Of a DNA stretch of 64,000 bases, positions 6,429 through 53,434 are shown piece after piece; position 1 is the first letter of the stretch; the number at the start of each line of letters is the position of its first letter. Both the position numbers and the translations under genes were made by a program. Source of the DNA: Anthoceros angustus (lineage: Eukaryota; Plantae; Anthocerotophyta); assembly GCA_010909165.1 (NCBI GenBank), contig MU008169.1, positions 1,426,001-1,490,000 on the forward strand. The letters run 5' to 3'. The notes beneath the pieces were generated by a model that was not told the DNA's origin, did not search any database, and worked only from the letters and a program-made list of their open reading frames with translations.

Positions 6429-6532
6429 CTTATCACAAGTTTCCTCAAATCCTTAATTGTCAGAAAACGTTTTCACCAATACATATTCAGGCTATCATAT
6501 TGAAAGTCACACTATGTTCTAGACATATACCC

Positions 6533-7383
6533 TCATGGATCGATCTCCTCCTTTTTGTTTTGACAAGAGGTAGCCTCCATCAAGCATGTGGACAAATAGG
6601 TTATGATGTCATATTGGAATAGTACAAGTAACATGACTTGCAAAAGTAAATATTCACCGCATAAAAAGCATACTCATCATCGTTGGTGCACTCATCCTCC
6701 TTTTCAGCTTTTGACAAGAGGTCCCCTCACGTCAAGCATGTGGACAAATAGGTTACGATGTCATATTGGAATAGTACACAAGTAGTAACATGACTTACAA
6801 ACCAAAACAAAAAATCTTACCAGGATAAGAGCATACTCATCGTTGGTGCAGGCACTTGCCCCATGCATATCGGACCATGTAGCCAAAGATACCACATTAT
6901 GGATATCATGACCATATAGACTTTCGTCAAAACCAAAGCCACCCACAAAGCGCGCTATGGTTCCTTGCCCATGACACTTGCCGTTGTTTTGATTGAGCTT
7001 AGCAAATATAGTAAAACTCCCACATTTGGTGCTCGTAGCTCTCGTTATCTCAACAAACCACTTGTCGTGCTCTAAGCCAATCTTGGAGATAATCCACATT
7101 ATCGCAAGGTGCAGGCAAGAATCTTTGGCAAAAGACAAGCAATTAGCACACAAAATAAGTCATAAAGAGTAATTCTGCACATTTCATCCAAATTACGACA
7201 TGTTTCAAAAGCTTAGCGAAATTTATCATCTCGCTTCCATAATCTCGAACGAATTAAAGGTTAACATTGTCCCAAACTTTTGAAGGCGTGGGACATTTTC
7301 GCCACCAACTAATACTGACCTATATAAGCTCTACAACGAACCCCAAGACCACAATCATCCAACTAGACGTTGCATCCCGCCAT
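6533..7383 (-). CDS. Array gene, unit 1: 4-exon putative secreted protein (frameshifted as assembled)
   Basis: GCCATGG start at 7383, same exon/intron layout as the unit 12 copy, TGA at 6535-6533. Confidence 0.55.
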
Positions 7384-8499
7384 GGCTATCACTAATACCA
7401 AGAGGTCTTTGCTTAAAATTCAAGCAAGAAAGGTGTAATGCTCATACCACATCTTGCCACATATATATAACCTCTAACAAGTTTTGGTCTTGATGTTTTG
7501 TTTCAAAATTCGAAAGGATGGCAAGGTTTTGTTTTGTTTTAAATGAAGCTTTGATTAACAAGGTCTTTTGAAGAAAATGGGATGGGTTTTTTTGTTTGTT
7601 TTTCAAACTTTCCAAGACTTAGCAATTGCACATGCCGATTGCTAGTAATTAATAGGGATAGGCGGGGCGGATCTCGGGAAGAGGCTCCAATTGGGCCTTT
7701 GTTGTAACTTCGTCCCAACTACATGTCGCGGTGAGTGTGAGGGGTCATGGGGGAGAAAAGCGTAGTGTTGAGAAGAGACAATCAAGGGGCAAGAGTTTGA
7801 GTTGGTCAGCCGACTCGTCCTCTGGTTGTTGAGGACTTAGATGTTGTGGTGATGGCAGGATGACTTTCGGCCTTGGACTTCTATTCCCTTGGAGGGAGGA
7901 CGTCTTCAACTCGCCGTTGTGGTATGTATGGTGGACTGTGTGTAGAGGTTAGATAAAACTCAAGGACGAGGGTAGAATTTCAAGGCACTCGGCAAATGTT
8001 TGCACCAAATGAAACATCAAGGCGCACGTTGGGCTATGTACTACGTACCGTACCCCAAGAGGTGGTTCGAGAATAACTAACTTTTGAAAAACAGTAAGGT
8101 CAACACTTATATTTCTATTTTTGAGAGTTTCAACATTCTCTGCAAATATTGCTATCAGATTTTAACATTTATTAAAATTCATACTTACCTAGAACCAAGC
8201 ACATGTATTGTGGCGCGACTTTCGCTGACGGCCAGCCGGGCGCGCACAATCCCGTGTCGTTGTAGTAAGGAGTCCGTTCCCGAGAGAATGATAAGCTCCG
8301 TTTGCCGCGTTCGACTGATCCTTACCTTGCGTCCGCTCAACTTTAACACACGTAATCGCTGCTTTGCGCCTAACTACTCATAACGTTCACCGAGCAGGCC
8401 GGTGTGGCCAAACGCTTAAGGACCTGCTTGCCCCAGACGCCACCTTTAGTCCGTTCCTCTCATCACTCCTACCACGCCATCAACCTTGGAAAAGAACGC

Positions 8500-10365
8500 A
8501 AGTGGCTACACCGACCTCCTCCGTTGCTCAGCGGGCCTCTCGTCCGGCTCAGACGCCTCCCGAGTTCCTCCGCTCACATGCCCGTCCGCTGACGCCGCCG
8601 CCTGACGAACACGTCCCCGCCGCCTTCCCCGCACACACCACCACACGTTAGGGTCGTCACGGGACCTTGATCCTCCCGAGCCGCTCCGCCAGGACTCAGA
8701 CTCACGCTAGCATGAAGACACACAAGGTGCAAGCAGCATCAACACCAAGAGAAGATGATTTATTCAGAGCCTCATCTTATACTACGCCCAAGTCGGCGTC
8801 TTTATTACACTTATTCGAGCTGGTGGCACCCAAGACGCCCTAATCGGCCGCCTACCATCCTATTCCTCCCTCCTATCTCCTTCGTCGGTGGGCTGGGAAG
8901 GTCACAGGTTCCGTCTCGGGATTGGTGGTCCAATCTCCGTCTCGGGATTGGTGGTCAATCTCCCGTCGGCGATTGCGGCGCACAATCGGATGATCCGCGA
9001 GGCGGACCCCTTCCTCTTCCCGAATCCCGCCAGTTTTACAAGGCGGCCGACGACCGCCACACTACGCAACTTCCCCCTGCCCCCCCAAAGGTCCCTCCAG
9101 AGGGCCACCGACGCCCGCCTCCCCCAGCCAGAAGCCTGAGGGACCTCCTCGTTGCTCAGCGGGCCTCTCGTCAGACTCTGCCGCCCTCCGGAGTTCCTCC
9201 GGCTCCGTTCGGTCCGCTCGTCTTTGGGCGGCTGCTGCAGGCGAACACGGGTCCCCGTCGCTCTTCCTGCACACACCACCACGTTGGTCGTCACGGGACC
9301 TTGATCGATCTCTCCGGGGTGCCGTGCACTTTCGACTCGGGACTCACGTTAGCATGAAGACACACAAGGTGCAAAGCGGCATCAACACCAAGAGAAGATG
9401 ATTTAGCCTCGGCCCTCTTATACTCGCCCAAGTCGGCGTCTTTATTACCCTATTACGGTGGTGGCGGCCAGTCCATGTCGGCCGCCTACCATCCTATTCC
9501 TCCTCCTATCTCCTTCGTCGGCGGTGGGCACAGGAAGGTCACAGGTTCCGTCTCGGTATTGGTGGTCAATCTCCCGTCAGCAGTTCTGGCGCACCCAATC
9601 GGATGATCCGCGGGACCCCTTCCTCTTCCGGAATCACATCGGGTTGGGCGGCGGTCGGCGGCCGCGTTACCACACGTCTCCCCCCAGCTGTGGGTCCCCT
9701 CGGTAGAGGCCGGTATACGCTAAGTCGGAGGGACTCCTCCTTGCTTCGAGTCCGACTCGAGGTCCGGCCTCGACCCCGAGTCTCGAACTCGGAGTCCGCT
9801 TTATTCCCGAGTCCGGCCTCAGGTCCGGCTCATCTCGGGTTCGACCTCGTGGTCCCCTTATTACACGGGTCCCCGTCGCTCTTCCTGCACACACCACCAC
9901 GTTGGTCGTCACGGGACCTTGATCGATCTCTCGGGGCGTGCACCTTTCGATGACTCGGGACTCACGTTAGCATGAAGACACACAAGGTGCAAAGCGGCAT
10001 CAACACCAAGAGAAGATGATTTAGCCTCGGCCCTCTTATACTCGCCCAAGTCGGCGTCTTTATTACCCTATTACGGTGGTGGCGGCCAGTCCATGTCGGC
10101 CGCCTACCATCCTATTCCTCCTCCTATCTCCTTCGTCGGCGGTGGGCACAGGAAGGTCACAGGTTCCGTCTCGGTATTGGTGGTCAATCTCCCGTCAGCA
10201 GTTCTGGCGCACCCAATCGGATGATCCGCGGGACCCCTTCCTCTTCCGGAATCACATCGGGTTGGGCGGCGGTCGGCGGCCGCGTTACCACACGTCTCCC
10301 CCCAGCTGTGGGTCCCCTCGGTAGAGGCCGGTATACGCTAAGTCGGAGGGACTCCTCCTTGCTTC
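8500..10365. repeat. About 3 tandem copies of a ~620-640-bp unit inside the 6.4-kb insertion
   Basis: The marker GCATGAAGACACACAAGGTGC occurs at 8710, 9352 and 9970. Identical 82-aa ORFs occur at 9458 and 10076, 618 bp apart. Confidence 0.9.
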
Positions 10366-11968
10366 TGAGTCCGGACCTCGGGGTCGGTACTCAGTCGAAC
10401 TTGAGTGCCTTATTCCAGAGTCCGGTCTGCGGGTCGGTCTCATCTCAGGGTTCGGACCTCGGTCGAACTTGTCTCAGTCGGTCCCCAAGCTCCGACTTTA
10501 TCTCGGACCTCATCGCTAGGTCCTCATCCCTACCCACCGACCCTTGTCTTGGGTGGGTTGGCTTCCTCCTTCCGCGCCTTCTGTGGCCGCCTATCCTCCC
10601 GAGCAGTGTTGCGTGGACTTACCCCGAGATCCGTTGTATTGGCCTGGCCCGCCTCCCGAGGCTCTTCTCCCCGCTGCTGCCTCCAAACAGGCCACTAGGG
10701 TCCCCGTCTTGTCCCCATGCCCTTCATCCCTTGAGCCTTGGGTCCGTCCATGTGGCGGCGAGAGGCTTCTTAAGGAGCTCGGCGTGGTAGTAGGCAAAAT
10801 CCGAGTCAATTCTTTGGATTGCCTCTTCCACATGTGCGGAGCACCGATACTCCTTCGCCATTGGTGCTCGGGAGGCGTCTTTGTCGACTGGACCATCTCC
10901 CTGCCGGGTTTCGGTGGGCGGGGCGAATCTCGAGGCCACAAGGGCCGCCTCGGTCACCTCCAGCAACCGCTGTTGCTCACTTTGCTCCGGCTCCGTCGTT
11001 TCGCTCTGCGGCTTAGCCATAGCGCGGCGCTCCTTCCGCCTTCCTTAAGCGGACCGGCGGCTTCTTTTGCGTCCGGTGCTCTCGCTCCCGTTCATACGGC
11101 GTTAGCTCGCCATCTCCCTCTCCGGGCGGTCGGGCAACTCTGCCCGGATTCTTCAGTCCTTCTCCATTTGACGTCCTGCTCCTTGTTCCATCGCCTTACC
11201 TCCTCCGTCCAGCCTTTGGGGCCGCTCTATCTCGTTCGTGATCGTGATCACGCCTGATACCATTCCTCTCAATGGTAACTTGGGGGACTCGAGTCTCTTT
11301 GCGGTCTTCCATCTCCGCCTGTTGCTCCACCTCACGGCGGGGCGGAGATCCTCCATCTCCTTGCGGGCTTCCTTCTCCTCGGCATGGTGGCCCTTTGCTC
11401 GCCGCCTCCTGCTCCTTCTTGAGTTAGCGCGCTATCCCCGTCTCCCTCCACGGTTCGATCACGCCGATAGTGATCGCGGTCGATCTTAGCTTCCTCCTCG
11501 CCTTCACAGGCCCCCCGACTTGGTGGTCGGTAGACCGCCTCGGCCAGTCGCGAGCCTTCTGCTTCGGCCTCCTCGCCTCTGTGCGCTACCCCTCTCACTT
11601 GCGAGGTCTTGACCGCTTGGGCCTCATGCACCTTGTGCTCACCCGGTGAAGGAATTTAGTCCGGTCTGTCGAATGGACGGACTTCCCTTCGGCCTCCGTT
11701 TCCCTTCTTGATGCGGCCGAGAGCTTGCCTTCCTCCTCGCCTCTGGGCCTCCAAGCTGCTCTGGAGGAGCACCATCGCCTCCGGTGGCTTCTACTTCACA
11801 GGTCTTCTCGGTCCCATGAGACCCCCAGCATCATCCATGGTGGCAGGACGCCGTGTCTCTTCCACGGCCGCCACCGGTGAGACCCCAAAAGTCCGTAGTG
11901 GGAGGCGGGCATCTCACGGTCCGCCGAGGACCTCCACACATGATCGGAGTAAGTCGGGGTGGGTTCTC

Positions 11969-13795
11969 GGACCTAATCGGGCCTTAGGTCACGATTGAGT
12001 CGGAGCTTCCTCCTTGGCCCTCTTGGCCGCCAATTCCTTATTCGCCCTCTTAGTCACAGGGCTCGGAGGGTGAGGGGTTCGGGCCTTGCCTCTCCCGGTC
12101 GGCAGCAGGGGCAGCTCGGAGTGGGGTTCTTTGACCCCACTCCTTGGCGTCCTTTACGCTCTTCTCACGCCTCTTGACCTCTTGCCACTCCGTGGGCGGG
12201 GCAAAACACCGCTGAGTGCTGCGTTAGAGTGTGGCATCTTCCGCCTCTTGATTGCCGGCGAGTTCGTCAGCTCTCTTGCCGTTGTGGTGGTGTTTGTTGG
12301 CGTCGGGCCGTCTCTGCTGCCTTGGTTGCTCGTGAGGCACCAAGAGGAGGCGGGGATATCTTCCACACTTCCCTAGGTGGTGAGGGGTCCGTTCGGGCGT
12401 ATGGTCAGTGTCCCTTCGATCGTCCTCCTCCGGACCCGTTTGGCCCTAGGGGTCGGGCCTCTACCTCAGGCGCCTTTGCCGCTCTTACAGTAGGGCCGCC
12501 AACCCTTTCCGGGCGCCGCTCTACCTCCCCATCCTTGAGGAGTCGTAATGTCCCCATACATGGATCGGGTATGGGGATAGTCCAGCGGCTTCTCGCTCCT
12601 CGACACGGGCCTCTGGCTGAACGGCGAAGATGATCCTTCCCGTCCGCCTCTTGCCCCAGCGCATGCGGGAACACAAATTATCACCAAGGTGATCCACCTT
12701 GGTGAGCAAGTTCGATGGACAATGATCAGACTCGCCTCACCCCTGTCGGCGGTCGATATCAACCGGCCGTTGGTTGTCATTGCGTTCGGGCTTGACGCCG
12801 CCCTTCGCCTCTATCTTTCCCTCGCCTTGAGGGGCTGCGGGACTCGCCCCCATCCTCCTCCGTTGGGCGGTTGTAAGCCGCCTCGGACCTAATCGGGTCC
12901 CTTAGGTCACGATTGCCGGTCGGAGCTTCACCCTCCTTGGCCCTCTTGGCCGCCAATTCCTTATTCGCCCTCTTAGTCACAGGGCTCGGAGGGTGAGGGT
13001 GGGGCCCTTGCCTCTCCCGGTCGGCAGGGGCCCGGCTCAGTGGGTTGCCGGTGACCCACTCCTTGGCGGCGTCCTTTACGCTCTTCTCACGCCTCTTGAC
13101 CTCTTGCCACTCGTGAAACACAGCTGAGTCTGCGTTGGTGTGGCACCGTCTTCCGCCTCTTGATTGCCGGAGGTCGGGGCTCCTCTCTCCGTTGTGGTGG
13201 TGGGTGTTTGTTGGTCGGGCCGTCTCTGCTGCTTTGGCTCGTGAGGCACCAAGAGGAGGAAGCGGGGATATCTTCCACACTTCCCTAGGTGGTGAGGGGT
13301 CCGTTCGGGCGTATGGTCGTATCCCTTCGATCGTCCTCCTCCGGACCCGTTTGGCCCTAAAGGGGCCTCTACCTCAGGCGCCTTGCCTCACCCTTCAGTA
13401 GGGCCGCCAACCCTTTCGGGCGCCGCTCTACCTCCCCATCCTTGAGGAGTCGTAATGTCCCCATACATGGATCGGGTATGGGGATAGTCGAGAGCGGTGG
13501 CTTCTCGCTCCTCGACTTGCGGGCCTCACAGGCGAACGGCGAAGATGATCCTTCCCGTCCGCCTCTTGCCCCAGCGCATGCGGGAACACCAACAAATTAT
13601 CACCAAGGTGATCCACCTTGGTGAGCAAGTTCGATGGACAATGATCCTCCCTCACCTCATCCGGTCCGATATCAACCGGCCGTTGGTTGTCATTGCGTTC
13701 GGGCTTGACGCCGCCCTCTATCTTTCCCTCGCCTTGAGGGGCTCGGACTCGCCCCCATCCTCCTCCGTTGGGCGGTTGTAAGCCGCCTCGGACCT
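11969..13795. repeat. ~915-bp tandem duplication inside the 6.4-kb insertion
   Basis: CGGACCTAATCGGG...TTAGGTCACGATTG occurs at 11969 and 12884. The ORF track shows paired fragments (MEDIPASS, LLTKVDHLGDNL). Confidence 0.9.
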
Positions 13796-15485
13796 CAAGG
13801 TCCATCACAGGATCCTCCGGAGGTTCTTGGACGAACCTCCTTGTTGGCCGCCAACATCTTGAACTCCGGACGGGTACCTTGTCAAGCGTCAGACGGCTGG
13901 AACACGTCTAAGTGCCACTCTTGACTAATCCTCCGCTCCTCCTCGGCCCAAAGTCCGGATAGCGCGGGTTACAATGTTGCGCTCTACCGGGTTCCATGGC
14001 TCCCATACCTCCATGACCTTTTGGGTCCCATCGCCTTCTTCTCCTTTCGTGTTTGTAGTGTGCACGAGATCGGCGGCGATCGCCCTCTTGCTGCGTTGTT
14101 TTCCAACCCCAGCGGTGAGCGGCAGATGCTGGCGTTCAAGAGATAGCGCGGGCGGGTTGCGGGCGCAAGAGGCTGCGGTGTCTCGAGGTCGCAGAAATGA
14201 CCCTCCTCGTCGGCCGTGGAAATAACCGGGGCGGAGGTGCCTCTTCCCTGTAGCGCGGTGCGCATGGCTTACTCGACCTTGCGCGCGTACTCGGCCTTCT
14301 GTTGCGGTCAGCGGGCGTGAATACTGCCTGCGGCAGTCGGTCTGGCTGCTGCATGCCCGACCTCCACTCGGGGCCGTCCGTGGCGCGCTCGATCATCCTC
14401 ACGACTCAACTTACTTTCCTGGCGTACTTATCTGTTTTGACCGGGTGGGGTCGGACTTATCCGTTACCCGGTGCGATCCGTAGCTCGTCATAGTGGTACC
14501 GGGGTCCGTTACCTCGGTCGGAGTATACTCGGAGCCCAGTCCGGAGCACCATCCGTGCTTATTCCTCCCTTTCCGCCTTATTTTACTATTCGGACCTACG
14601 AAAAATACAAAACCCTGCTTATTTCCTAATCCCCAAGGGAAGTCCGTAGCCCACATGTACCTCCCCCAAAGAAACCCTTGTCTCCCAATCAAACCCTAGT
14701 TTCATCGAGCCTTCTTCTTTGGGAAAGCAGCCTACAAGGCCTCCAAGAATGAGCTGCGTGGGAGACCAGGTGTCCCATGAGGCCTCCACGACCAGCCCCA
14801 ATTCCACAACCCGGCTCGAGCTGGCCTCCCACTCGCCCTCTCGCTCACAGTGAGATTCTCACCACTAGAGTCATGTGCACTGGTGTTTTCGCTTTTGGCG
14901 GTTTCTAGTGATCGTTTCTCGAGGAGTCCATTTTGAGTTATTTAATTTCCAAAATTTCATTATTTTACATTTCCAATTAATTTCCAAGCACTCTTCGTGG
15001 TAACCTAGTTAGCTCCATTGCTTCGTGCATTCCACCTTCTCAATCCAATTAAAAGATCTCTTTTTATGGTTTTGAAGTCAATTGATATAGATCATAACTC
15101 GAAGTGGTTGGAGGTTTGAGCACTTTGCATACCTACATACCTACATAGTTACATGGTATGTAATAAGAACAACAAACACTTTATGGGTCCGACAAAACTA
15201 CGACGCGGTGACGTCGCGAATACGCTCCTCGAATTCCATACTCAGCTCTTGTCGACCACCGAGCACATTGACATACCACGCCAAGCCTCCTCGTGCGGAG
15301 CGACAAGCAACAATTGTTGTTCTAGTAAATTTTGAGGTCAATTGAGCGTTTTGAGGCTAGCTTTAGTTTGGAGTTTTGGGGCTTATCACAAGTTTCCTCA
15401 AATCCTTAATTGTCAGAAAACGTTTTCACCAATACATATTCAGGCTATCATATTGAAAGTCACACTATGTTCTAGACATATACCC

Positions 15486-16350
15486 TCATGGATCGATCTC
15501 CTCCTTTTTTGTTTTGACAAGAGGTGGCCTACGTCAAGCATGTGGACAAATAGGTTATGATGTCATATTGGAATAGTACAAGTAACATGACTTGCAAAAA
15601 GTAAATATCTTACCGCATAAAAAGCATACTCATCATCGTTGGTATCAGCTCCTCCTTTTTCGACTTTTGACAAGAGGTCCCCTCGTCAAGCATGTGGACA
15701 AATAGGTTCGATGTCATATTGGAATAGTACTTACAAGTAGTAACATGACTTACAAACCAAAACAAACAAAATCTTACCGGATAAGAGCATACTCATCGTT
15801 GGTCAGAGCACTTGCCCCGATGCATATCAAACCATGTAGCCAAAGATACCACATTATGGATATCACGACCATATAGACTTTCGTCAAAACCAAGCCACCC
15901 ACAAATCGCGCTATGGTTCCTTGCCCATGACACTTGCCGGTGTTTGATTGAGCTTGGCAAATATAGTAAAACTCCCACATTTGGTGCTCGTAGCTCTCGT
16001 TATCTCCAACAAACCACTTGTCGTGCTCTAAGCCAATCTTGGAATAATCCACATTATCGCAAGGTCAGGCAAGAATCTTTGTACAATAGACAAAACGCAA
16101 TAGCACACAAAATAAGTCATAAAGAATAATTGCATGCATTTTACGCAAATTACACGACATGTTTCAAAAGCATACGGAAATTTATCATCTCGCGTCCATA
16201 ATCTCTGAACGAATTAAAGGTTAACACTGTCCCAAACTTTTGAAGACGTGGGACATTTTTGACGCCACCAACTAATACAGCGCCTATAGCGCTGCACAAA
16301 CAGAACCCCAAGACCACAATCATCCAACTAGACGCGTGGCATCCCGCCAT
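15486..16350 (-). CDS. Array gene, unit 2
   Basis: Exon 1 is open in the ORF track: MAGCHASSWMIVVLGFCLCSAIGAVLVGGVKNVPRLQKFGTVLTFNSFRDYGREMINF. Stop at 15488-15486. Confidence 0.6.
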
Positions 16351-17957
16351 GGCTATCACTAATACCAAGAGGTCTTTGCTTAAAATTCAAGCAAGAAAGG
16401 TGTAATGCTCATACCACATCTTGCCACATATATATAGCCTCTAACAAGTTTTGGTCTTTGATGTTTTTGTTTCAAAATCAAAGGATGGCAAGGTTTTGTT
16501 TTTGTTTTAAATGAAGCTTTGATTAACAAGGTCTTTTGAAGAAAATGGGATGGGTTTTTTTTTTTTTTTCAAACTTTCCAAGACTTGGCAATTGCATGCT
16601 GATTGCTAGTAATTAATAAAGGGATAGGCGAGGCGGATCTCGAAGAGGCTCCAATTGGGCCTTCTTTCGTCCCAACTACATGTCGCGTGAGTTTGAGGGG
16701 CTATGTGGGGAGAAAAGAGTGTTGAGAAGAGACAATCAAGGGGCAAGAGTTTGAGTTGGTCGCTTGTCCTCTTGGTTGTTGAGGACTTAGATGTTGTGGT
16801 GATGGTAGGATGACTTTCGGCCTTGGACTTCTATTCCTTGGAGGGAGGGCGTCTTCAACTCGCTGCAATGTGTATGGTGGATTGTGTAGAGGTTAGATCG
16901 AACTCAAGGACGAGGGTAGAATTTCAAGGCACTCGGCAAATGTTTGCACCAAATGAAACATCAAGGCAACGTTGGGCTATGTACTACGACTGCACCAGAG
17001 GTGGGTCGAGAAAATGACTAACTTTTGAAAAAAGAAGGTCAATACTTATATTTCTATTTTTGAGAGTTTCAACATTCTCTCGCAAATATTGCTATGATTT
17101 TAACATTTATTAAAATTCATACTTACTTAGAACCAAGCATGTACCTCCCCAAAGAAACCCTTGTCTCCCAATCAAACCCTAGTTTCATCGAGCCTTCTTC
17201 TTTGGGAAAGCATGCCAAGGCCTCCAAGAATGAGCGTGGGAGACCGGTGTCCCGAGGCCCTCCACGACCCGCTCCCCAATTCCACAACCTTGACTCCCGA
17301 CAAGCTGGCCTCCCACTCGCCCTCTCGCTCACGAGATTCTCACCTTTTCTAGAGTCATGTGCACGTGTTTTCTCGCTTTTGGCTTTCTAGTGATCGTTTC
17401 TCGAGAGTCCGGCATTTTGAGTTATTTAATTTCCAAAATTCATTATTTTACATTTCAATTAATTTCCAAGCACTCTTCGTATGCAGAGTTAGCTCCATTG
17501 CTTCGTGCATTCCACCTTCTCAATCCAATTAAAAGATCTCTTTTATGGTTTTGAAGTCCAATTGATATAGATTATAACTCGAAGTGGTTGAGGTTTGAGC
17601 ACTTTGCACCTACATACCTACATAGTTACATGGTATGTAATAAGAACAACAAACACTTTATGGGTCCGACAAAACTACCAACGGCGTGCGCAGAACACAC
17701 TCCTCGAATTCCATACCATGAGCTCTTGTCGACCACCGAGCACATTGACATACCACGCCAAGCCTCCTCGTGCGGGCGACAAGCAACAATTGTTGTTCTA
17801 GTAAATTTTGAGGTCAATTGAGCGTTTTGAGGCTAGCTTTAGTTTGGAGTTTTGGGGCTTATCACAAGTTTCCTCAAATCCTTAATTGCAAATTTTTTCA
17901 CCAATACATAGGCTATCATATTGAATGAAAGTCACACTATGTTCTAGACATATACCC

Positions 17958-38789: not shown

Positions 38790-39700
38790 GACGGCATAGT
38801 GCTCGTGGAACTCTTTGGAGGCATCAGTACCGGCTTGGAAGCAGTGCTAAAGTGTGGCATCAAAGTGCGAAGATACGTGCATTGTGACCCGGATCCAAAA
38901 GCAAGGATTGTGTCACAGAAGCGCGTAAGAGACTTGATGGGGAGTACCTAACCTCGGCGTGGGAGTCGGTGAAGGGTTACCGGAAGCTGCGATGGATGTT
39001 CGCATGATAGGGTTGTCCCATTTGAGTTGTCTTGGGCAACCGGTGGACCTTGTCATCGCAGTTGGGAGTGTCAAGGACTATCCTCTGCAGCAAGGGTCAA
39101 GGTCTCAAGGATCCACGAACAGCATTGTTCTATGACTGATGAGGATCTTGCGCTTGATCCGAGAAAGGGCAAGAAAGGCCTTGTGGATACATGTTGGAGA
39201 ATGTGCCATGCATGAGCGTGAAGAAGCAAGTTCAGGAGGACTTTGCCACGATCCGAGGAGTGTTGGGTCGAGCTTCTATTGGATGCGACTCAATTTGGTT
39301 CGAGGGCTCATAGGTTGAGGTCCATGTGGACTAACCTTGCTCCCTTGGAACATTTGAAGTGTGCGAGGTCGCTCACCAAGCGACCTAATCATGTTGTCAA
39401 GGATGTGCTAGCATCGGAAGGCATGCCCAACAAGTCATCAAGGCGACAAGCCGCACTTCCGTGAACACGCTGGACACCCCATGGCGGCTTGGCCAACCTT
39501 TGTGTCTAAGTCCAAGTCTTACGCCTTGGAACCATGGCCCGGCGTTGTGGTGGAGACATGGCGAGGCCTTGGGAGAGCCAACAACCAGAGAGGAGTTGGC
39601 CATGGATTTGATCGGAGCCACGAAGACACCGGAGTGACCGAGAAGGAACGGTGTCGATTGCTTGGGCAAGCATTTGACGTGAACATGATGACTGGTTGTT
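38790..39700 (+). pseudogene. DNMT3-like C5 cytosine DNA methyltransferase domain within pol (frameshifted as assembled)
   Basis: Motifs appear in canonical order. I-II: IVLVELFGGISTGLEAVLKCGIKVRRYVHCD (38796). IV: PVDLVIA(G)WECQGLS (Cys codon 39069), then GLKDPRTALFYD. VI: YMLENVP (39197). VIII: DATQFGSRAHRLRSMWTNL (39282). X: GVTEKERCRLLGQAFDV (39631). Confidence 0.88.
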
Positions 39701-39869
39701 TAGCTGGGTACCAACGAAACCAAGAAGGCGGGGTTGAAGCGGTGGTTCGGTGGGTGAAGGACATTCCACTCGCATCTCAACAGGAGAAGGCGAGTTTGGA
39801 GGGCAAGGAGAGCGAGCACGTGAGGAAGCGTGCAAGCCATCGAGCCACAACCACATGAGTGGTTAACAG

Positions 39870-40171
39870 TCGAGTTGAAGAGCAATCAGCGGCGTGCTAA
39901 AGGAGTTGTTGGAGGCATCGCGACATGTGTTTGCTTTCACGCTTGCGGAGATGGGGAAGTACACCAAAGGGAAGTTCCACATAGAACTAATCAAGAATGA
40001 ACCGGTGTTGGAGGCACAGCTCGATGAGGCAAGAAGAAAATGGCGAGCAACCGGGGAGAGTAGTCCACATGACAGCCCATAAGGATCAAGACAAGCCTCC
40101 ACTCATGGACAAGGTTCATAACCTCGACGACATTCCGAAGGAGATTGGTTTTGTGCACAATGCGCTACATG
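39870..40171 (+). pseudogene. Pre-RT stub fused by deletion to a C-terminal PHD-finger remnant
   Basis: LKELLEASRHVFAFTLAEMGKYTKGKFHIELIKNEPV is typical of the segment preceding gypsy RT. No YxDD, RNase H or integrase core follows. The region ends LDDIP(x)GDWFCAQCAT* after one indel correction. Confidence 0.6.
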
Positions 40172-40229
40172 AGGTGCGTCGTGTGTAGTCCTACTAATGA
40201 TAATGTTTTGACTAGAGTCTCACATTATC

Positions 40230-40238
40230 AGGGGGGGA
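40230..40238 (+). promoter_or_regulatory. Polypurine tract
   Basis: AGGGGGGGA immediately before the 3' LTR. Confidence 0.8.
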
Positions 40239-40905
40239 TTGGTTGCACCTATATATCTGCGTATTCGATTTGTTGCTTGGTTGTTGGTCGAGGAAGTGCT
40301 TATATGAATTCAAGTGCTTACCTCGCGACAGCCATGCCGTGTGATACTAATCTGCACTTGGGTTTAGTGTTTGATTAGCATTAATTAATCTAATTACTTA
40401 TCTTTAAGTAAGTAATTAGTGTTAATTAATCTAAGGTGCTTATGCTAATTAAGCATTGATTAGTGTTAATTAAACTAATGTGCTTATGCTAATTAAGCAT
40501 TGATTAGTGTTAATTAATCTAATGTGCTTATGTTAATTGAGCATTGATTAGTGTTATTTAGACATGGTTAGCAATAGCTAAGTGGATAACCTCAAGTAAT
40601 ATGCTTGGCATATTCCTTGCACATTATAGTGTATTCTTAGGATATTTCGCATACCGATGCCAATAGGATATCTTAGGAATATGCCGATGCGTGGTCTAGT
40701 ATATAGACCCTTCCATTGAGGACAAGCTCGGATCATAGCTTGTCCTCTAGATATGCAATGCAAGAGCGCTTGTGAGGAGGCCAAAGCTATGACTCAGGAG
40801 GCGATGTGTGAGGAATTTGCGTGTTGTTCTCGTGGGGAGAGTGTGTTTGTGCCACGACGTGCGAGCTACTCCCTCCTGTTGTTACAAGCTATGATCGCTA
40901 TGATC
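40239..40905 (+). repeat. 3' LTR, truncated (~660 bp), with its first ~93 bp inverted
   Basis: 40239-40330 is the reverse complement of 34694-34789; the remainder is a direct repeat. It ends in a 9-bp duplication (GCTATGATC)x2. Confidence 0.85.
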
Positions 40906-42043
40906 GTTTTGACAAGAGGTGGCCTACGTCAAGCATGTGGACAAATAGGTTATGATGTCATATTGGAATAGTACAAGTAACATGACTTGCAAAAAGTAAA
41001 TATCTTACCGCATAAAAAGCATACTCATCATCGTTGGTCGGTACCAGCTCCTCCTTTCAGCTTTTGACAAGAGGTCCCCTCGTCAAGCATGTGGACAAAT
41101 GGGTTCTGATGTCATATTGGAATAGTACTTACAAGTAGTAACATGACTTACAAACCAAAACAAACAAAATCTTACGGATAAGAGCATACTCATCGTTGGT
41201 CGGTGGCGGCACTTGCCCCGATGCATATCGACCATGTAGCCAAAGATACCACATTATGGATATCACGACCATATAGACTTCGTCAAAACCAAGCCACCCA
41301 CAAATCGCGCTATGGTTCCTTGCCCATGACACTTGCGTGTTTGATTGAGCTTGGCAAATATAGTAAAACTCCCACATTTGGTGCTCGTAGCTCTCGTTAT
41401 CTCCAACAAACCACTTGTCGTGCTCTAAGCCAATCTTGGAATAATCCACATTATCGCAAGGTCCGGGCAAGAATCTTTGTACAATAGACAAAACGCAATA
41501 GCACACAAAATAAGTCATAAAGAGTAATTGCATTTTACGCAAATTACGACATGTTTCAAAAGCTTACGAAATTTATCATCTCGTCCATAATCTCGAGCAA
41601 TTAAAGGTTAACATTGTCCCAAACTTTTGAAGACGTGGGACATTTTTGTCGCCACCAACTAATACGCCTATAGCGGCAAATGAACCCCAAGACCACAATC
41701 ATCCAACTAGACGCGTTGCATCCCGCCATGGCTATCACTAATACCAAGAGGTCTTTGCTTAAAATTCAAGCAAGAAAGGAGTAATGCTCATACCACATCT
41801 TGCCACATATATATAGCCTCTAACAAGTTTTGGTCTTGATGTTTTGTTTCAAAATTGAAAGGATGGCAAGGTTTTGTTTTGTTTTAAATGAAGCTTTGAT
41901 TAACAAGGTCTTTTGAAGAAAATGGGATGGGTTTTTTTTTTGTTTTTTTTTTTCAAACTTTCCAAGACTTGGCAATTGCACATCTTGATTGCTAGTAATT
42001 AATAGGGATAGGCGGATCTCCGTGAAGAGGCTCCAATTGGGCC

Positions 42044-42398
42044 TTTGGTGCTCGTAGCTCTCGTTATCTCCAACAAACCACTTGTCGTGCTCTAAGCCAA
42101 TCTTGGAATAATCCACATTATCGCAAGGCAGGCAAGAATCTTTGTCTGTACAATAGACAAAACGCAATAGCACACAAAATAAGTCATAAAGAGTAATTGC
42201 ATTTTACGCAAATTACGACATGTTTCAAAAGCTTACGAAATTTATCATCTCGCGTCCATAATCTCCGAGCAATTAAAGGTTAACATTGTCCCAAACTTTT
42301 GAAGGCGTGGGACATTTTTGTCGCCACTAACACATACTGCGCTGTGCCTGCAACCCCAAGACCACAATCATCCAACTAGACGCGTTGCATCCCGCCAT
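42044..42398 (-). pseudogene. Extra partial array gene copy (exon 1 and the first part of exon 2) from an internal ~670-bp duplication
   Basis: Junction at the TTTG microhomology 42044-42047; ATG at 42398. Confidence 0.6.
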
Positions 42399-44018
42399 GG
42401 CTATCACTAATACCAAGAGGTCTTTGCTTAAAATTCAAGCAAGAAAGGTGTAATGCTCATACCACATCTTGCCACATATATATATAGCCTCTAACAAGTT
42501 TTGGTCTTGATGTTTTGTTTCAAAATTGAAAGGATGGCAAGGTTTTGTTTTTGTTTTAAATGAAGCTTTGATTAACAAGGTCTTTTGAAGAAAATGGGAT
42601 GGGTTTTTTTGTTTCAAACTTTCCAAGACTTGGCAATTGCACATCTTGATTGCTAGTAATTAATAGGGATAGGCGGGCGGATCTCCGGAAGAGGCTCCAA
42701 TTGGGCCTTTGCAGAACTCGTCCCAACTACATGTCGCGGTGAGTGTGAGGGCTGGGGGAGAAAAGCGTAGTGTTGAGAAGAGACAATCAAGGGGCAAGAG
42801 TTTGAGTTGCCGACCGTCCTCTTGGTTGTTGAGGACTTAGATGTTGTGGTGATGGCGGGATGACTTTCGGCCTTGGACTTCTATTCCCTTGGAGGAGGAC
42901 GTCTTCAACTCGCCGTTGTGGTATGTATGGTGGATGTGTAGAGGTTAGATCGAACTCAAGGACGAGGTAGAATTTCAAGGCACTCGGCAAATGTTTGCAC
43001 CAAATGAAACATCAAGGCGCACGTTGGGCTATGTACTACGTCTGCAGGAGGTGGGTCGAGAATAACTAACTTTTGAAAACAAGAAGGTCAATACTTATAT
43101 TTCTATTTTGAGAGTTTCAACATTCTCTCAAATATTGCTATCGATTTTAACATTTATTAAAATTCATACTTACTTAGAACCAAGCATGTACCTCCCCAAA
43201 GAAACCCTTGTCTCCCAATCAAACCCTAGTTTCATCGAGCCTTCTTCTTTGGGAAAGCACTGCAAGGCCTCCAAGAATGAGCGTGGGAGACCGGTGTCCC
43301 ATGAGGCCCTCCACGACCCGCTCCCCAATTCCACAACCAGCTCGACAAGCTGGCCTCCCACTCGCCCTCTCGCTCACAGAGATTCTCACCTTTTCTAGAG
43401 TCCGCATGTGCACTGGTGTTTTCGCTTTTGGCGGTTTCTAGTGATCGTTTCTAGAGTCCCATTTTGAGTTATTTAATTTCCAAAATTCATTATTTTACAT
43501 TTCAATTAATTTCCAAGCACTCTTCGTGGTACGGTAGTTAGCTCCATTGCTTCGTGCATTCCCACCTTCTCAATCCAATTAAAAGATCTCTTTTATGGTT
43601 TTGAAGTCCAATTGATATAGATCATAACTCGGAAGTGGTTCGGAGGTTTGAGCCGCATACCTACATACCTACATAGTTACATGGTATATAATAAGAACAA
43701 CAAACACTTTATGGGTCCGACAAAACTACCAACGACGCGGCGCGTCAGGAACGCCCTCGAATTCCATACTCAGCTCTTGTCGACCACCGAGCACATTGAC
43801 ATACCACGCCAAGCCTCCTCGTGCGGGCGACAAGCAACAATTGTTGTTCTAGTAAATTTTGAGGTCAATTGAGCGTTTTGAGGCTAGCTTTAGTTTGGAG
43901 TTTTGGGGCTTATCACAAGTTTCCTCAAATCCTTAATTGTCTCAAAACGCGTTTTCACCAATACATATTCGAGCTATCATATTGAATGAAAGTCACACTA
44001 TGTTCTAGACATATACCC

Positions 44019-44879
44019 TCATGGATCGATCTCCTCCTTTTCGTTTTGACAAGAGGTGGCCTCGTCAAGCATGTGGACAAATAGGTTATGATGTCATATT
44101 GGAATAGTACAAGTAACATGACTTGCAAAAGTAAATATCTTACCGCATAAAAGCATACTCATCATCGTTGGTCGGTACCAGCTCCTCCTTTTCAGCTTTT
44201 GACAAGAGGTCCCCTCGTCAAGCATGTGGACAAATAGGTTACGATGTCATATTGGAATAGTACAAGTAGTAACATGACTTACAAACCAAAACAAAAAAAA
44301 TCTTACCGGATAAGAGCATACTCATCGTTGGTCGGTAGCGGCACTTGCCCCCGATGCATATCAGACCATGTAGCCAAAGATACCACATTATGGATATCAT
44401 GACCATATAGACTTTCGTCAAAACCAAAGCCACCCACAAAGCGCGCTATGGTTCCTTGCCCATGACACTTGCCAGTGTTTGATTGAGCTTGGCAAATATA
44501 GTAAAAACTCCCACATTTCAGGTGCTCGTAGCTCTCGTTATCTCCAACAAACCACTTGTCGTGCTCTAAGCCAATCTTGGAATAATCCACATTATCGCAA
44601 GGTGCAGGCAAGAATCTTTGTACAATAGACAAAACGCAATAGCACACAAAATAAGTCATAAAGAGTAATTGCGGGCATTTCATAAATTACGACATGTTTC
44701 AAAAGCTTACGGAAATTTATCATCTCGCGTCCATAATCTCCGAGCGAATTAAAGGTTAACATTGTCCCAAACTTTTGAAGGCGTGGGACATTTTTGTCGC
44801 CAACTAATCTGACGCCTATAGCGCTGCACAAGAACCCCAAGACCACAATCATCCAACTAGACGCGTTGCATCCCGCCAT
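44019..44879 (-). CDS. Array gene, unit 12 (reference copy): 4-exon putative secreted protein, ~195 aa
   Basis: Exons at about 44879-44711, 44615-44307, 44213-44144 and 44060-44019. GCCATGG start context, three GTAAG donors, and introns of ~85-100 bp ending in AG. Exons 1 and 2 are each open in the ORF track (44592..44897 and 44303..44683). The N-terminus MAGCNASSWMIVVLGFLCSAIG is hydrophobic. Confidence 0.65.
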
Positions 44880-44957
44880 GGCTATCACTAATACCAAGAG
44901 GTCTTTGCTTAAAATTCAAGCAAGAAAGGTGTAATGCTCATACCACATCTTGCCACA

Positions 44958-44965
44958 TATATATA
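44958..44965 (-). promoter_or_regulatory. TATA box of the array gene (conserved in every promoter-bearing unit)
   Basis: CTATATATATG on the minus strand ~80 bp upstream of the ATG. Confidence 0.6.
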
Positions 44966-46505
44966 GCCTCTAACAAGTTTTGGTCTTGATGTTTTGTTTC
45001 AAAATTGAAAGGATGGCAAGGTTTTGTTTTGTTTTAAATGAAGCTTTGATTAACAAGGTCTTTTGAAGAAAATGGGATGGGTTTTTTTTTTGTTTCAAAC
45101 TTTCCAAGACTTGGCAATTGCACATCTTGATTGCTAGTAATTAATAGGGATAGGCGGGGCGGATCTCGGGAAGAGGCTCAATTGGGCCTTTGCGTAACTC
45201 GTCCCAACTACATGTCGCGGTGAGTGTGAGGGGGGGGAGAAAAGCATAGTGTTGAGAAGAGACAATCAAGGGGCAAGAGTTTGAGTTGGTCGACTGTCCT
45301 CTTGGTTGTTGAGGACTTAGATGTTGTGGTGATGGCGGGATGACTTTCGCCTTGGACTTCTATTCCCTTGGAGGAGGGCGTCTTCAACTCGTTGTGGTAT
45401 GTATGGTGGATTGTGTAGAGGTTAGATCGAACTCAAGGACGAGGTAGAATTTCAAGGCACTCGGCAAATGTTTGCACCAAATGAAACATCAAGGCGCACG
45501 TTGGGCTATGTACTACGTCTGCACCAGAGGTGGTTCGAGAATAACTAACTTTTGAAAAGCAGTAAGGTCAATACTTATATTTCTATTTTTGAGAGTTTCA
45601 ACATTCTCTCAAATATTGCTATGATTTTAACATTTATTAAAATTCATACTTACTTAGAACCAAGCACATGTACCTCCCCAAAGAAACCCTTGTCTCCCAA
45701 TCAAACCCTAGTTTCATCGAGCCTTCTTCTTTGGGAAAGCAGCAAGGCCTCCAAGAATGAGCCGTGGGAGACCGGTGTCCCGAGGCCTCCACGACCCGCT
45801 CCCCAATTCCACAACCAGCTCCCGACAAGCTGGCCTCCCACTCGCCCTCTCGCTCACAGATTCTCACCTTTTCTAGAGTCCGCATGTGCACGTGTTTTCT
45901 CGCTTTTGGCTTTCTAGTGATCGTTTCTCGAGTCCGGCATTTTGAGTTATTTAATTTCCAAAAATTCATTATTTTACATTTCAATTAATTTCCGCAAGCA
46001 CTCTTCGTGGTACGGTAGTTAGCTCCATTGCTTCGTGCATTCCCACCTTCTCAATCCAATTAAAAGATCTCTTTTATGGTTTTGAAGTCCAATTGATATA
46101 GATCATAACTCTGGAAGTGGTTCGAGGTTTGAGCACTGCATACCTACATATATACATAGTTACATGGTATATAATAAGAACAACAAACACTTTATGGGTC
46201 CGACAAAACTACCAACGACGTGCGCGGCCGCAGGAACACAGCTCCTCGAATTCCATACTCGCAGCTCTTGTCGACCACCGAGCACATTGACATACCACGC
46301 CAAGCCTCCTCGTGCGGAGCGACAAGCAACAATTGTTGTTCTAGTAAATTTTGAGGTCAATTGAACGTTTTTGAGGCTAGCTTTAGTTTGGAGTTTTGGG
46401 GCTTATCACAAGTTTCCTCAAATCCTTAATTGTCAACGTTTTCACCAATACATATTCGAGCTATCATATTGAATGAAAGTCACACTATGTTCTAGACATA
46501 TACCC

Positions 46506-47367
46506 TCATGGATCGATCTCCTCCTTTTCGTTTTGACAAGAGGTGGCCTCGTCAAGCATGTGGACAAATAGGTTATGATGTCATATTGGAATAGTACAAG
46601 TAACATGACTTGCAAAAAGTAAATATCTTACCGCATAAAAAGCATACTCATCATCGTTGGTCGGTACCAGCTCCTCCTTTTCAGCTTTTGACAAGAGGTC
46701 CCCTACGTCAAGCATGTGGACAAATAGGTTACGATGTCATATTGGAATAGTACTTACAAGTAGTAACATGACTTACAAACCAAAACAAACAAAATCTTAC
46801 CGGATAAGAGCATACTCATCGTTGGTCGGTAGCGGCACTTGCCCCCGATGCATATCAGACCATGTAGCCAAAGATACCACATTATGGATATCATGACCAT
46901 ATAGACTTTCGTCAAAACCAAAGCCACCCACAAAGCGCGCTATGGTTCCTTGCCCATGACACTTGCCGGTGTTTGATTGAGCTTAGCAAATATAGTAAAA
47001 CTCCCACATTTCGGTGCTCGTAGCTCGTTATCTCCAACAAACCACTTGTCGTGCTCTAAGCCAATCTTGGAATAATCCACATTATCGCAAGGTCCGGGCA
47101 AGAATCTTTGTACAATAGACAAAAGCATAATAGCACACAAAATAAGTCATAAAGAGTAATTGCGGCATTTTACAAATTACGACATGTTTCAAAAGCTTAA
47201 AATTTATCATCTCGCGTCCATAATCTCCGAGCAATTAAAGGTTAACATTGTCCCAAACTTTTGAAGGCGTGGGACATTTTTGTCGCCACCAACTAATCTG
47301 ACGCCTATAGCGGCGCTGTAACCCCAAGACCACAATCATCCAACTAGGCAGCGTTGCATCCCGCCAT
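46506..47367 (-). CDS. Array gene, unit 13
   Basis: Collinear copy; shows the TGACGTAG acceptor before exon 3 (46703-46704). Confidence 0.58.
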
Positions 47368-48984
47368 GGCTATCACTAATACCAAGAGGTCTTTGCTTAA
47401 AATTCAAGCAAGAAAGGTGTAATGCTCATACCACATCTTGCCACATATATATAGCCTCTAACAAGTTTTGGTCTTGATGTTTTGTTTCAGAATTCGAAAG
47501 GATGGCAAGGTTTTGTTTTGTTTTAAATGAAGCTTTGATTAACAAGGTCTTTTGAAGAAAATGGGATGGGTTTTTTTTTTTGTTTTTTCAAACTTTCCAA
47601 GACTTGGCAATTGCACATCGATTGCTAGTAATTAATAGGATAGGCGGGGCGATCTCGGAAGAGGCTCCAATTGGGCCTTTGTAACTCGTCCCAACTACAT
47701 GTCGCGGTGAGTGTGAGGCGGGGAGAAAAGCATAGTGTTGAGAAGAGACAATCAAGGGCAAGAGTTTGAGTTGGTCGCCGACTCGTCCTCTTGGTTGTTG
47801 AGGACTTAGATGTTGTGGTGATGGCGGATGACTTTCGGCCTTGGACTTCTATTCCCTTGGAGGAGGACGTCTTCAACTCGCCGTTGTGGTATGTATGGTG
47901 GATGTGTGTAGAGGTTAGATCGAACTCAAGGACGAGGTAGAATTTCAAGGCACTCGGCAAATGTTTGCACCAAATGAAACATCAAGGCGCGTTGGGCTAT
48001 GTACTACGTCTGCACTCGAGAGGTGGTTCGAGAATAACTAACTTTTGAAAAGCAGTAAGGTCAATACTTATATTTCTATTTTTGAGAGTTTCAACATTCT
48101 CTGCAAATATTGCTATCAGATTTTAACATTTATTAAAATTTATACTTACTTAGAACCAAGCACATGTACCTCCCCAAAGAAACCCTTGTCTCCCAATCAA
48201 ACCCTAGTTTCATCGAGCCTTCTTCTTTGGGAAAGCGATGCAAGGCCTCCAAGAATGAGCGTGGGAGACCGGTCCATGAGGCCTCCACGACCGCTCCCCA
48301 ATTCCACAACCAGCTCCCGACAAGCTGGCCTCCCACTCGCCCTCTCGCTCACAGTAGATTCTCACCTTTTCTAGAGTCCGCATGTGCACTGGTGTTTTCG
48401 CTTTTGGCGGTTTCTAGTGATCGTTTCTCGAGTCCGGCATTTGAGTTATTTAATTTCCAAAATTCATTATTTTACATTTCAATTAATTTCAGCAAGCACT
48501 CTTGTAATGCAGTAGTTAGCTCCATTGCTTCGTGCATTCCCACCTTCTCAATCCAATTAAAAGATCTCTTTTATGGTTTTGAAGTCCAATTGATATAGAT
48601 CATAACTCGAAGTGGTTCGAGGTTTGAGCCTTGCATACCTACATACCTACATAGTTACATGGTATATAATAAGAACAACAAACACTTTATGGGTCCGACA
48701 AAACTACCAACGGCGTGCGGACCGCCTCCCTAATTCCATACTCAGCTCTTGTCGACCGAGCACATTGACATACCACGCCAAGCCTCCTCGTGCGGGCGAC
48801 AAGCAACAATTGTTGTTCTAGTAAATTTTGAGGTCAATTGAGCGTTTTGAGGCTAGCTTTAGTTTGGAGTTTTGGGGCTTATCACAAGTTTCCTCAAATC
48901 CTTAATTGTCGAAAACGTTTTCACCAATACATATTCGAGCTATCATATTGAATGAAAGTCACACTATGTTCTAGACATATACCC

Positions 48985-49849
48985 TCATGGATCGATCTCC
49001 TCCTTTTCGTTTTGACAAGAGGTGGCCTCGTCAAGCATGTGGACAAATAGGTTATGATGTCATATTGGAATAGTACAAGTAACATGACTTGCAAAAGTAA
49101 ATATCTTACCGCATAAAAAGCATACTCATCATCGTTGGTCGGTGCCCTCCTCCTTTTCAGCTTTTGACAAGAGGTCCCCTCGTCAAGCATGTGGACAAAT
49201 AGGTTACGATGTCATATTGGAATAGTACTTACAAGTAGTAACATGACTTACAAACCAAAACAAACAAAATCTTACGGATAAGAGCATACTCATCGTTGGT
49301 CGGTGGCGGCACTTGCCCCGATGCATATCAAACCATGTAGCCAAAGATACCACATTATGGATATCACGACCATATAGACTTTCGTCAAAACCAAGCCACC
49401 CACAAATCGCTATGGTTCCTTGCCCATGACACTTGCCGGTGTTTGATTGAGCTTGGCAAATATAGTAAAACTCCCACATTTCGTGTGCTCGTAGCTCTCG
49501 TTATCTCCAACAAACCACTTGTCGTGCTCTAAGCCAATCTTGGAATAATCCACATTATCGCAAGGTCTGGGCAAGAATGCTGTACAATAGACAAAACGCA
49601 ATAGCACACAAAATAAGTCATAAAGAGTAATTGCAGGCATTTTACGCAAATTACACGACATGTTTCAAAAGCTTACGGAAATTTATCATCTCGCGTCCAT
49701 AATCTCCGAACGAATTAGAGGTTAACATTGTCCCAAACTTTTGAAGACGTGGGACATTTTTGTCGCCACCAACTAATACAGCGCCTATAGCGCTGCACAA
49801 ACAGAACCCCAAGACCACAATCATCCAACTAGACGTTGCATCCCGCCAT
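48985..49849 (-). CDS. Array gene, unit 14
   Basis: Collinear copy. Exon 1 ends TTC C|gtaag (49677) and exon 2 starts tacag|CA TTC (49579), a phase-compatible junction. Confidence 0.6.
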
Positions 49850-50994
49850 GGCTATCACTAATACCAAGAGGTCTTTGCTTAAAATTCAAGCAAGAAAGGT
49901 GTAATGCTCATACCACATCTTGCCACATATATATAGCCTCTAACAAGTTTTGGTCTTGATGTTTTGTTTCAAAATTGAAAGGATGGCAAGGTTTTGTTTT
50001 GTTTTAAATGAAGCTTTGATTAACAAGGTCTTTTGAAGAAAATGGGATGGGTTTTTTTTTTGTTTCAAACTTTCCAAGACTTGGCAATTGCACATCTGAT
50101 TGCTAGTAATTAATAGGGATAGGCGGGGCGGATCTCGTGAAGAGGCTCCAATTGGGCCTTTGCGTAACTCGTCCCAACTACATGTCGGTGAGTGTGAGGG
50201 GCTGGCGGGAGAAAAGCGTAGTGTTGAGAAGAGACAATCAAGGGGCAAGAGTTTGAGTTGGTCGACTCGTCCTCTTGGTTGTTGAGGACTTAGATGTTGT
50301 GGTGATGGCGGGATGACTTTCGGCCTTGGACTTCTATTCCCTTGGAGGGAGGACGTCTTCAACTCGCCGTTGTGGTATGTATGGTGGATGTGTGTAGAGG
50401 TTAGATCGAACTCAAGGACGAGGTAGAATTTCAAGGCACTCGGCAAATGTTTGCACCAAATGAAACATCAAAGCACGTTGGGCTATGTACTACGTCTGCA
50501 CGAGAGGTGGGTCGAGAATAACTAACTTTTGAAAACAGTAAGGTCAATACTTATATTTCTATTTTTGAGAGTTTCAACATTCTCAAATATTGCTATCGAT
50601 TTTAACATTTATTAAAATTCATACTTACTTAGAACCACATGTACCTCCCCCAAAGAAACCCTTGTCTCCCAATCAAACCCTAGTTTCATCGAGCCTTCTT
50701 CTTTGGGAAAGCAGCCTGCAAGGCCTCCAAGAATGAGCCGCGTGGGAGACCAGTGTCCTGCCGACAAGCTCGGCCTCCCAATGGCTAGTTGTTAATGTTG
50801 TAGGGGGTTACACCACATTGAAAATCGCTAGTTGTTTGTGCCCTGGAGAGGGTACTCCAGATTTAAAAAATTCCTTAGTGTGGGACTTCTATATATACTC
50901 TGAAGTAGAATTCTCTAAATAAACGTATATTGCTATCCAACTCACCGTTTTTTGTTTTGCATTAGAACGTCAAACACTTTTTAGGACGTGGTTT

Positions 50995-53418: not shown

Positions 53419-53434
53419 TGCATTCTACTCTCCG

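Follow-up and report, generated by a model that had tools for sequence, protein, structure and literature searches.

A tandem array of gene-like 2.48-kb units in Anthoceros angustus, possibly an amplified orphan gene

This work concerns a window of 64,000 nucleotides of the Anthoceros angustus genome (assembly GCA_010909165.1, contig MU008169.1, positions 1,426,001 to 1,490,000; the window is this whole stretch), in which self-BLAST delineates a head-to-tail tandem array of about 44 kb, at 6429-50758, with a gene-like module on the minus strand. The existence of the array is certain. As to its nature, the interpretation we tentatively prefer, giving it slightly less than an even chance, is that of an amplified orphan gene, or a very recent relic of one, whose breaks are mostly artefactual. 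The array would then be a long-monomer macrosatellite of a non-seed land plant, the product of unequal crossing-over, which would also have kept it uniform, and two mobile or foreign segments would later have split it. Each 2.48-kb unit would carry one minus-strand module, made of a TATA promoter, a leader of about 50 nt, a GCCATGG start, a hydrophobic signal or signal-anchor of about 29 residues, a single short intron, rich in T, and a second exon some 100 codons long, which stops at, or at most 16 codons past, the second proposed 'donor'. Such an orphan gene would have about two exons and 160-180 residues, its 3′ 'exons' being a 150-bp duplication in untranslated sequence, and most of its frameshifts and stops would be errors of the long-read consensus, made at methylated CG/CHG sites and in homopolymers.

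The array and its units

A tandem array of a 2.48-kb unit is what the original prediction had proposed, and the self-BLAST bears it out. About 17 units or unit fragments follow one another, contiguous save for two inserts (8201-14651 and 34695-40903), with unit lengths of 2.15-2.48 kb; coordinates within the array refer to the unit 45665-48161 as reference. Tandem Repeats Finder, with its period limit of 500, is blind to this array. Five full or near-full units belong to the long, 2.48-kb class (14652-17138, 28483-30839, 43185-45665, 45665-48161 and 48161-50637), including the three rightmost ones (43185-50637), which are all long and the most alike among units; the array's right end is a 120-nt terminal stub. 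Four units are of 2.15 kb (20732-22879, 22879-25023, 25023-27165 and 31571-33738), all of them without reference positions 2055-2381, i.e., some 330 nt located 270-600 nt upstream of the TATA box, and in the short unit 27165-28483 most of the gene region is deleted as well (reference 772-1619 gone). Fourteen copies of the gene region were aligned, all on the minus strand, and, just as had been predicted, 11 of them span the whole proposed gene, the other three spanning part of it. The layout is as follows.

6429-50758, minus strand: whole macrosatellite array (self-BLAST)
6429-8200, minus strand: leftmost partial unit, reference 738-2497, holding the full-span gene copy 6429-7496
14652-17138, minus strand: full 2.48-kb unit with exon 1 open (MAGCHASSW...MINF, within the open reading frame 16153-16386)
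17138-20732, minus strand: 1.5 unit, rearranged (416-2497 follows on 3-1602 of the reference), with one truncated and one full gene copy
20732-27165, minus strand: three 2.15-kb short units, reference 2055-2381 absent
27165-28483, minus strand: short unit minus most of the gene region
28483-33738, minus strand: long unit with partial duplication (28483-31571), then a short unit (31571-33738)
33738-34694, minus strand: unit fragment (reference 1-984), interrupted by the 6.2-kb insert
40904-43185, minus strand: unit fragments to the right of the insert (reference 864-2017, followed by 1345-2497), with two partial gene copies
43185-50637, minus strand: three full 2.48-kb units (self-BLAST)
2711-3029, minus strand: diverged (79-81%) unit segment outside the array

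As assembled, the units are 90-95% identical (94-95% for the three rightmost to one another), which is less than the near-identity that had been claimed for them. Nevertheless, columns at least 6 nt away from any CG/CHG site or homopolymer (clean columns, below) differ between units by 1.4% only, so that near-identity is probably right for the true sequence. This gives a homogenised core, with units 98.6% alike in clean columns, and a more diverged edge, the fragment 2711-3029, at 79-81%. Being made of contiguous head-to-tail monomers, homogenised and with a diverged edge, the array is a satellite, or macrosatellite. The edge fragment is the very segment expected next beyond the left border of the array, from which it stands 3.4 kb away, the interval (3030-6428) being a GC-rich stretch with no recognisable open reading frame. 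It is probably an old, non-homogenised array edge that was split off by insertion. When the unit was compared to the two inserts and to the rest of the window, no similarity other than this fragment was found.

The gene-like module

Thirteen copies include the 5′ end. In 12 of them the TATA box TATATATAT is followed 86 nt later by GCCATGG, and in the remaining one the start is GCTATGG, which agrees with the promoter and start originally read on the minus strand. The stretch from the TATA box to the ATG contains no CG/CHG site and is almost invariant between copies. The module is most readily followed in the copy at 43887-44992 (the best copy), the sole one where exons 1 and 2 are both open.

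44957-44965, minus strand: TATA box, 86 nt upstream of the ATG
44711-44879, minus strand: exon 1, with GCCATGG start and 56 codons plus 1 nt (MAGCNASSWMIVVLGFLCSAIGVRLVGDKNVPRLQKFGTMLTFNSLGDYGREMINF), then GTAAGC
44616-44710, minus strand: proposed intron 1, 95 nt, GTAAGC...AAAG, 32% G+C, T-rich
44303-44615, minus strand: exon 2, 103 codons FLPAPC...NDEYALIR (44306-44614), and TAA (44303-44305) formed by CGG|TAAG
44019-44213, minus strand: proposed exon 3 (44144-44213), intron 3 and exon 4 (44019-44060), within an internal duplication of about 150 bp

The exon 1 peptide starts with MAGCNASS and continues with a hydrophobic run of about 21 residues and then DKNVPRLQKFGTMLTFNSLGDYGREMINF, before the GTAAGC donor. 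Two of the 13 copies (15360-16464 and 43887-44992) keep exon 1 open all the way to the donor. This N-terminus, which the original prediction read as resembling a signal peptide, is indeed hydrophobic, and it may be a signal peptide or a signal-anchor. MAGCNASS has no basic residue, VGG|DK is a possible cleavage site, and the segment is the most scrambled patch of the alignment. When 1000 units were resampled from a first-order Markov model, three contained an ATG open reading frame (ORF) of at least 50 codons together with a hydrophobic N-terminus, a TATA box at -40 to -130 and a Kozak context, and none did so when GTAAG was also required. As the criteria were chosen after the data had been seen this is a rough guide only, by which the 5′ module is better than chance and pure chance is unattractive as explanation. 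Furthermore, G+C content is 46-47% in the exons, 32% in intron 1 and 43% in the whole unit, and the proposed intron 1 is like the introns of the flanking genes in both size and T-richness. Most copies have a GTAAG directly after all three of the proposed exon ends, and the last proposed exon is closed by GATCCATGA; the GTAAG donors of the original prediction are thus present, even if its four-exon reading fails (see below).

Exon 2 consists of about 100 codons starting with FLPGPCDNVDYSKIGLEHDKWFVGDNESYEH, and its G+C content is higher at first (0.54) than at second codon positions (0.39). Its first half is invariant, and one frame only is open across that half. Over the whole exon, the intended frame is open in just one of the 13 copies, the best one, and this with two compensating shifts (HLKCGSFYY in place of HQMWEFYY). 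Where the exon ends depends on the copy, the stop being CGG TAA in those with CCGGTAAG, whilst in those with CCGTAAG the frame is 16 codons longer, stopping after ...ALIRKILFVLVCKSCYYL. The best copy also contains an unspliced ORF of 126 codons, from its ATG at 44683, inside the 'intron', to TAA. As for the join of the two exons, it is in frame only in the two copies whose acceptor reads ACAG|CA; in the best copy there is an extra base at the end of exon 1 and one base before TTC, and a GT..AG splice one base short leads to TAG. Each piece of the consensus peptide originally quoted can be found in some copy, but no copy encodes the consensus protein. A two-exon model of 160-180 residues is therefore the most that the sequence supports, and as such it is possible but unproven.

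The third and fourth exons of the original prediction, on the other hand, do not survive. The block formed by the end of exon 2, intron 2 and exon 3, and that formed by the end of exon 3, intron 3 and exon 4, are the two copies of the duplication of about 150 bp, and an indel of 2 nt in what was taken for coding sequence distinguishes them. Whichever in-frame model is chosen, the DNA common to both is consequently read in different frames (DLLSKAEKEE in one case, ATSCQNEKEE in the other), which is unlike a repeated peptide under selection. In addition, the frame of proposed exon 3 runs GGA CCT CTT GTC AAA AGC TGA, with a stop after GPLVKS, so that the 'x' in the peptide GPLVKxEKEE, as it had been written, conceals a stop or a frameshift. 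The model of a four-exon secreted-protein gene was thus rejected, given that its last two exons are an internal duplication, that the frame assigned to them meets TGA and that exon 2 already stops before them; proposed exons 3 and 4 are probably untranslated.

Differences between copies and the rival explanations

Differences between the copies are far from evenly spread. The proportion of alignment cells differing from the consensus (a nucleotide consensus used solely to measure variability and frames) is 17.1% within 2 nt of a CG/CHG site versus 2.9% elsewhere. About half of the differences between units are indels. Positions near CG/CHG sites, 27% of the total, account for 70% of the indel cells, with homopolymers adding a further, smaller excess. 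A patch of 45 nt in the hydrophobic core exists in 13 different scrambled versions in 13 copies, and elsewhere there are invariant runs of up to 61 nt. Decay by deamination would yield an excess of transitions and a loss of CpG. Transitions number 380 versus 334 transversions here, and CpG is not depleted (95 observed, 114 expected). Base modification is a known source of error in nanopore basecalling (PMC7501810), and the breaks in the copies are likely to be errors that the long-read consensus made at modified cytosines, this being a repeat out of reach of short-read polishing. Against this stands the CG-rich duplication of 300 nt in the first insert, which is 100% identical, so that some CG-rich stretches are unaffected.

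Errors concentrated at CG/CHG sites and homopolymers make frameshifts poor evidence of pseudogenes. In the alignment of the 14 units no copy is intact as assembled, but the breaks, being probably assembly noise, neither kill nor prove the gene, and the scrambled patches put the true frame of the middle and the C-terminal end of exon 2 beyond recovery from this assembly. If consensus errors are indeed at work, the array would be methylated in both CG and CHG, a pattern that marks repeats under silencing and not active genes; it may then be heavily methylated and mostly silent in the sequenced tissue. It also follows that divergence dating, and pseudogene or variant calls, in the array are unreliable from this assembly: an apparent divergence of 5-10% accompanied by frameshifts is the pattern expected from methylation-linked errors, and accurate reads are needed before pseudogenes are called.

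Several observations weigh against the orphan gene, starting with its lack of relatives. Exons 1 and 2 were searched separately, each from assembled sequence. The second frame variant of exon 2 (44306-44614, minus strand) found no homologue among 1.84 billion representatives by full phmmer, and neither the exon 1 ORF nor a 157-codon ORF with the first frame variant found anything in a shared-word search of 5.8 billion clustered proteins. No Pfam family was matched, at E values up to 10, by either frame variant of exon 2, by exon 1 or by the exon 3 region, no PDB sequence was matched by exon 2, and a single-sequence AlphaFold2 model is uninformative (predicted local distance difference test, pLDDT, of 41). 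The frames are no more helpful: no copy is intact as assembled, exons 1 and 2 being one base out of phase even in the best one, the modal CACCGAAA variant (five copies) leads to a TGA, CATCGGG, also modal (nine copies), swaps ...QVPLPTNDEYALIR for a different tail, and a clean C/T difference creates a TAA in the preferred frame of exon 2 in five of the 13 copies. ORFs of 110-168 codons without family exist elsewhere in the unit, and when frameshifts are tolerated, long open paths appear on either strand; ORF length is without discriminating power in this unit. The T-rich 'intron' itself translates into a signal-like peptide, which means that such N-termini arise cheaply here. Finally, the exons are not less variable than proposed introns 2 and 3; variability tracks the density of CG/CHG sites rather than the exon/intron layout and gives no signal of selection, clean substitutions being too few for that comparison.

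The original prediction recognised no family, and these searches agree with it. The single phmmer match of exon 2 was discarded as a spurious translated satellite ORF, with 10/29 identities repeated five times. Metagenome contigs, scanned twice for exact matches to invariant strings of exon 2, yielded none, the other large ORFs of the unit (110-168 codons) match no Pfam family, and Rfam at gathering score and a tRNA scan gave no hits in the window, so an array of structured RNAs is not matched. With the closest sequenced relative being distant, the lack of relatives shows only lineage specificity; by these comparisons the sequence of exons 1 and 2 is lineage-specific.

The rival that deserves most attention is a plain non-coding satellite, its promoter- and ORF-like strings being fortuitous or fossil and its function, if any, structural or heterochromatic. 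It would account for the lack of homologue, domain and confident fold, for ORFs just as good elsewhere in the unit, whose statistics do not discriminate, for differences that track CG/CHG sites and so suggest dense methylation as in heterochromatin, and for the invasion of the array by two inserts; long-monomer satellites are, moreover, known in plants (PMC7004042). It is still somewhat unlikely, in our opinion, as it leaves to accident the combination of TATA box, Kozak ATG, hydrophobic N-terminus and GTAAG (0-3 per 1000 resampled units), a G+C contrast between exons and intron and an intron size which match those of genes nearby, and the fact that the first, invariant half of exon 2 has a single open frame. 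At the other extreme, and unlikely too, the array would hold at least 11 truly intact and near-identical copies of a TATA-driven gene for a small orphan protein, secreted or membrane-anchored, which annotation misses on account of repeat masking and of long-read errors at methylated sites, and which is switched on conditionally or in particular tissues.

Real decay is harder to accept. An array in which a functional small gene was amplified and then acquired genuine frameshifts and stops would be in keeping with every copy being broken as assembled, with the clean C-to-T change to TAA in the preferred frame of five of the 13 copies, and with one unit having lost most of the gene and others being truncated or rearranged. 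Yet the breaks sit in small CG/CHG and homopolymer patches, half of them indels and with no excess of transitions, CpG is not depleted, clean columns differ by only 1.4%, and a patch scrambled differently in each of 13 copies has no plausible mutational history; this makes true pseudogenes improbable. Very improbable is an origin of the satellite from a transposable element, for example from a long terminal repeat (LTR) or from the internal tandem repeats of a retrotransposon, of which the 'gene' would be a remnant. Many long-monomer plant satellites do arise in this way (PMC7004042), and one diverged piece of the unit (2711-3029) stands apart from the array, but that lone fragment looks like an old array edge, the unit is unlike the inserts and the rest of the window, and no ORF of the unit has a transposon protein domain in Pfam; a match to a known transposable-element protein, which would have spoken against the original prediction, was not encountered. 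The orphan gene, or its very recent relic, is the interpretation retained in what follows.

Inserts, flanking genes and known systems

The two segments that interrupt the array are these.

8201-14651, no strand assigned: GC-rich (58-61%) insert splitting the array, with internal tandem duplications and no Pfam domain
34695-40903, no strand assigned: 6.2-kb insert with direct terminal repeats of about 600 bp (LTR-like), flanked by a perfect 122-nt array duplication

The first has a period of about 618 nt at 8513-10461, including the 300-nt stretch that is 100% identical, and another of about 915 nt at 11966-13795, with 88% identity. Its ORFs overlap on both strands, and none of them matches a Pfam domain. 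The terminal repeats of the second (34796-35438 and 40333-40896) are 88-96% identical. A segment of 90 nt at its left end, 34701-34790, is an inverted copy of 40238-40325, just before the right repeat, and the insert also contains a (GCTAGGCGAT)n microsatellite (35452-35600) and 32-nt repeats (35675-35863). Its ORFs, too, gave no Pfam domain. On both sides of it lies the same array sequence of 122 nt (34573-34694 = 40904-41025), which far exceeds the usual target-site duplication and is 100% identical, even though array copies differ by 5-10%; this could be an assembly join, or the result of an exchange between units after the insertion.

To its right, the array is flanked by a compact row of minus-strand genes (50995-62951): Methyltransf_16 (50995-51807), Isy1 (52522-53418), Chromosome_seg (53987-54766) and a WW-domain protein (ORF 61950-62951). 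The Isy1 and methyltransferase genes are single uninterrupted ORFs, and two further ORFs of this strand, 55567-57702 (711 codons) and 60486-61904 (472 codons), have no Pfam domain. Short T-rich, intron-like stretches lie near 61905-61985 and 55390-55580, and a 43-nt tandem repeat (53435-53582, 3.4 copies, 88% matches) directly upstream of the start codon of Isy1. The Isy1 protein is 75-77% identical to its lycophyte, Ginkgo, Sphagnum, Marchantia and fern counterparts alike, with a best match of 86% in a Logan contig (L001, SRR33208241). When that contig was compared to the window, Isy1 was all they shared (77% nucleotide identity), with no synteny and no array. An exact look-up of the Isy1 protein gave no record, and these comparisons point to a land-plant lineage that the protein collection lacks; a hornwort was suggested by the equal distances and by the gene density, and the window shows no sign of a pathogen, virus or toxin.

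How would such an array relate to those already described? Tandem genes for small secreted or cysteine-containing plant proteins are usually diverged paralogues, of recognisable families and with intact ORFs. The orphan gene proposed here would resemble them in being short and locally amplified, with an N-terminal hydrophobic signal and few short introns, and would depart from them by units that are probably about 98-99% alike, by 1.5 kb of co-amplified spacer and by its lack of relatives. The 3.3-kb units of the human D4Z4 array, an example of a coding macrosatellite, each contain the ORF of DUX4 (PMC10620044). DUX4 belongs to a recognisable family, that of the double homeobox, and is intronless within the unit. 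Like the D4Z4 array, the present one has a kilobase monomer, tens of head-to-tail copies and one promoter-bearing, gene-like module per unit, to which dense cytosine methylation, probable silencing of most units and a copy number set by unequal exchange might be added. The differences are that here the putative ORF is an orphan with a proposed intron, and that the host is a plant. The resemblance to D4Z4/DUX4 would accordingly lie in how the array works, by analogy, and not in membership.

With the long-monomer satellites of plants (PMC7004042) the array shares a tandem monomer of kilobase size, length variants and transposon insertions, as well as a homogenised core with a more diverged edge fragment. 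Those satellites are often derived from retrotransposons (PMC7004042), unlike the present unit, which bears no likeness to transposon proteins or to the elements of the window, and which carries a 5′ module like that of an RNA polymerase II gene. Standard repeat masking removes loci of this sort ahead of gene calling. If the gene works, it would be a young orphan, with a dose that depends on the length of the array and with methylation controlling its expression, and the array would be a plant counterpart of the coding macrosatellites. It is to these (D4Z4/DUX4), and to the long-monomer plant satellites, that the array is closest in kind.

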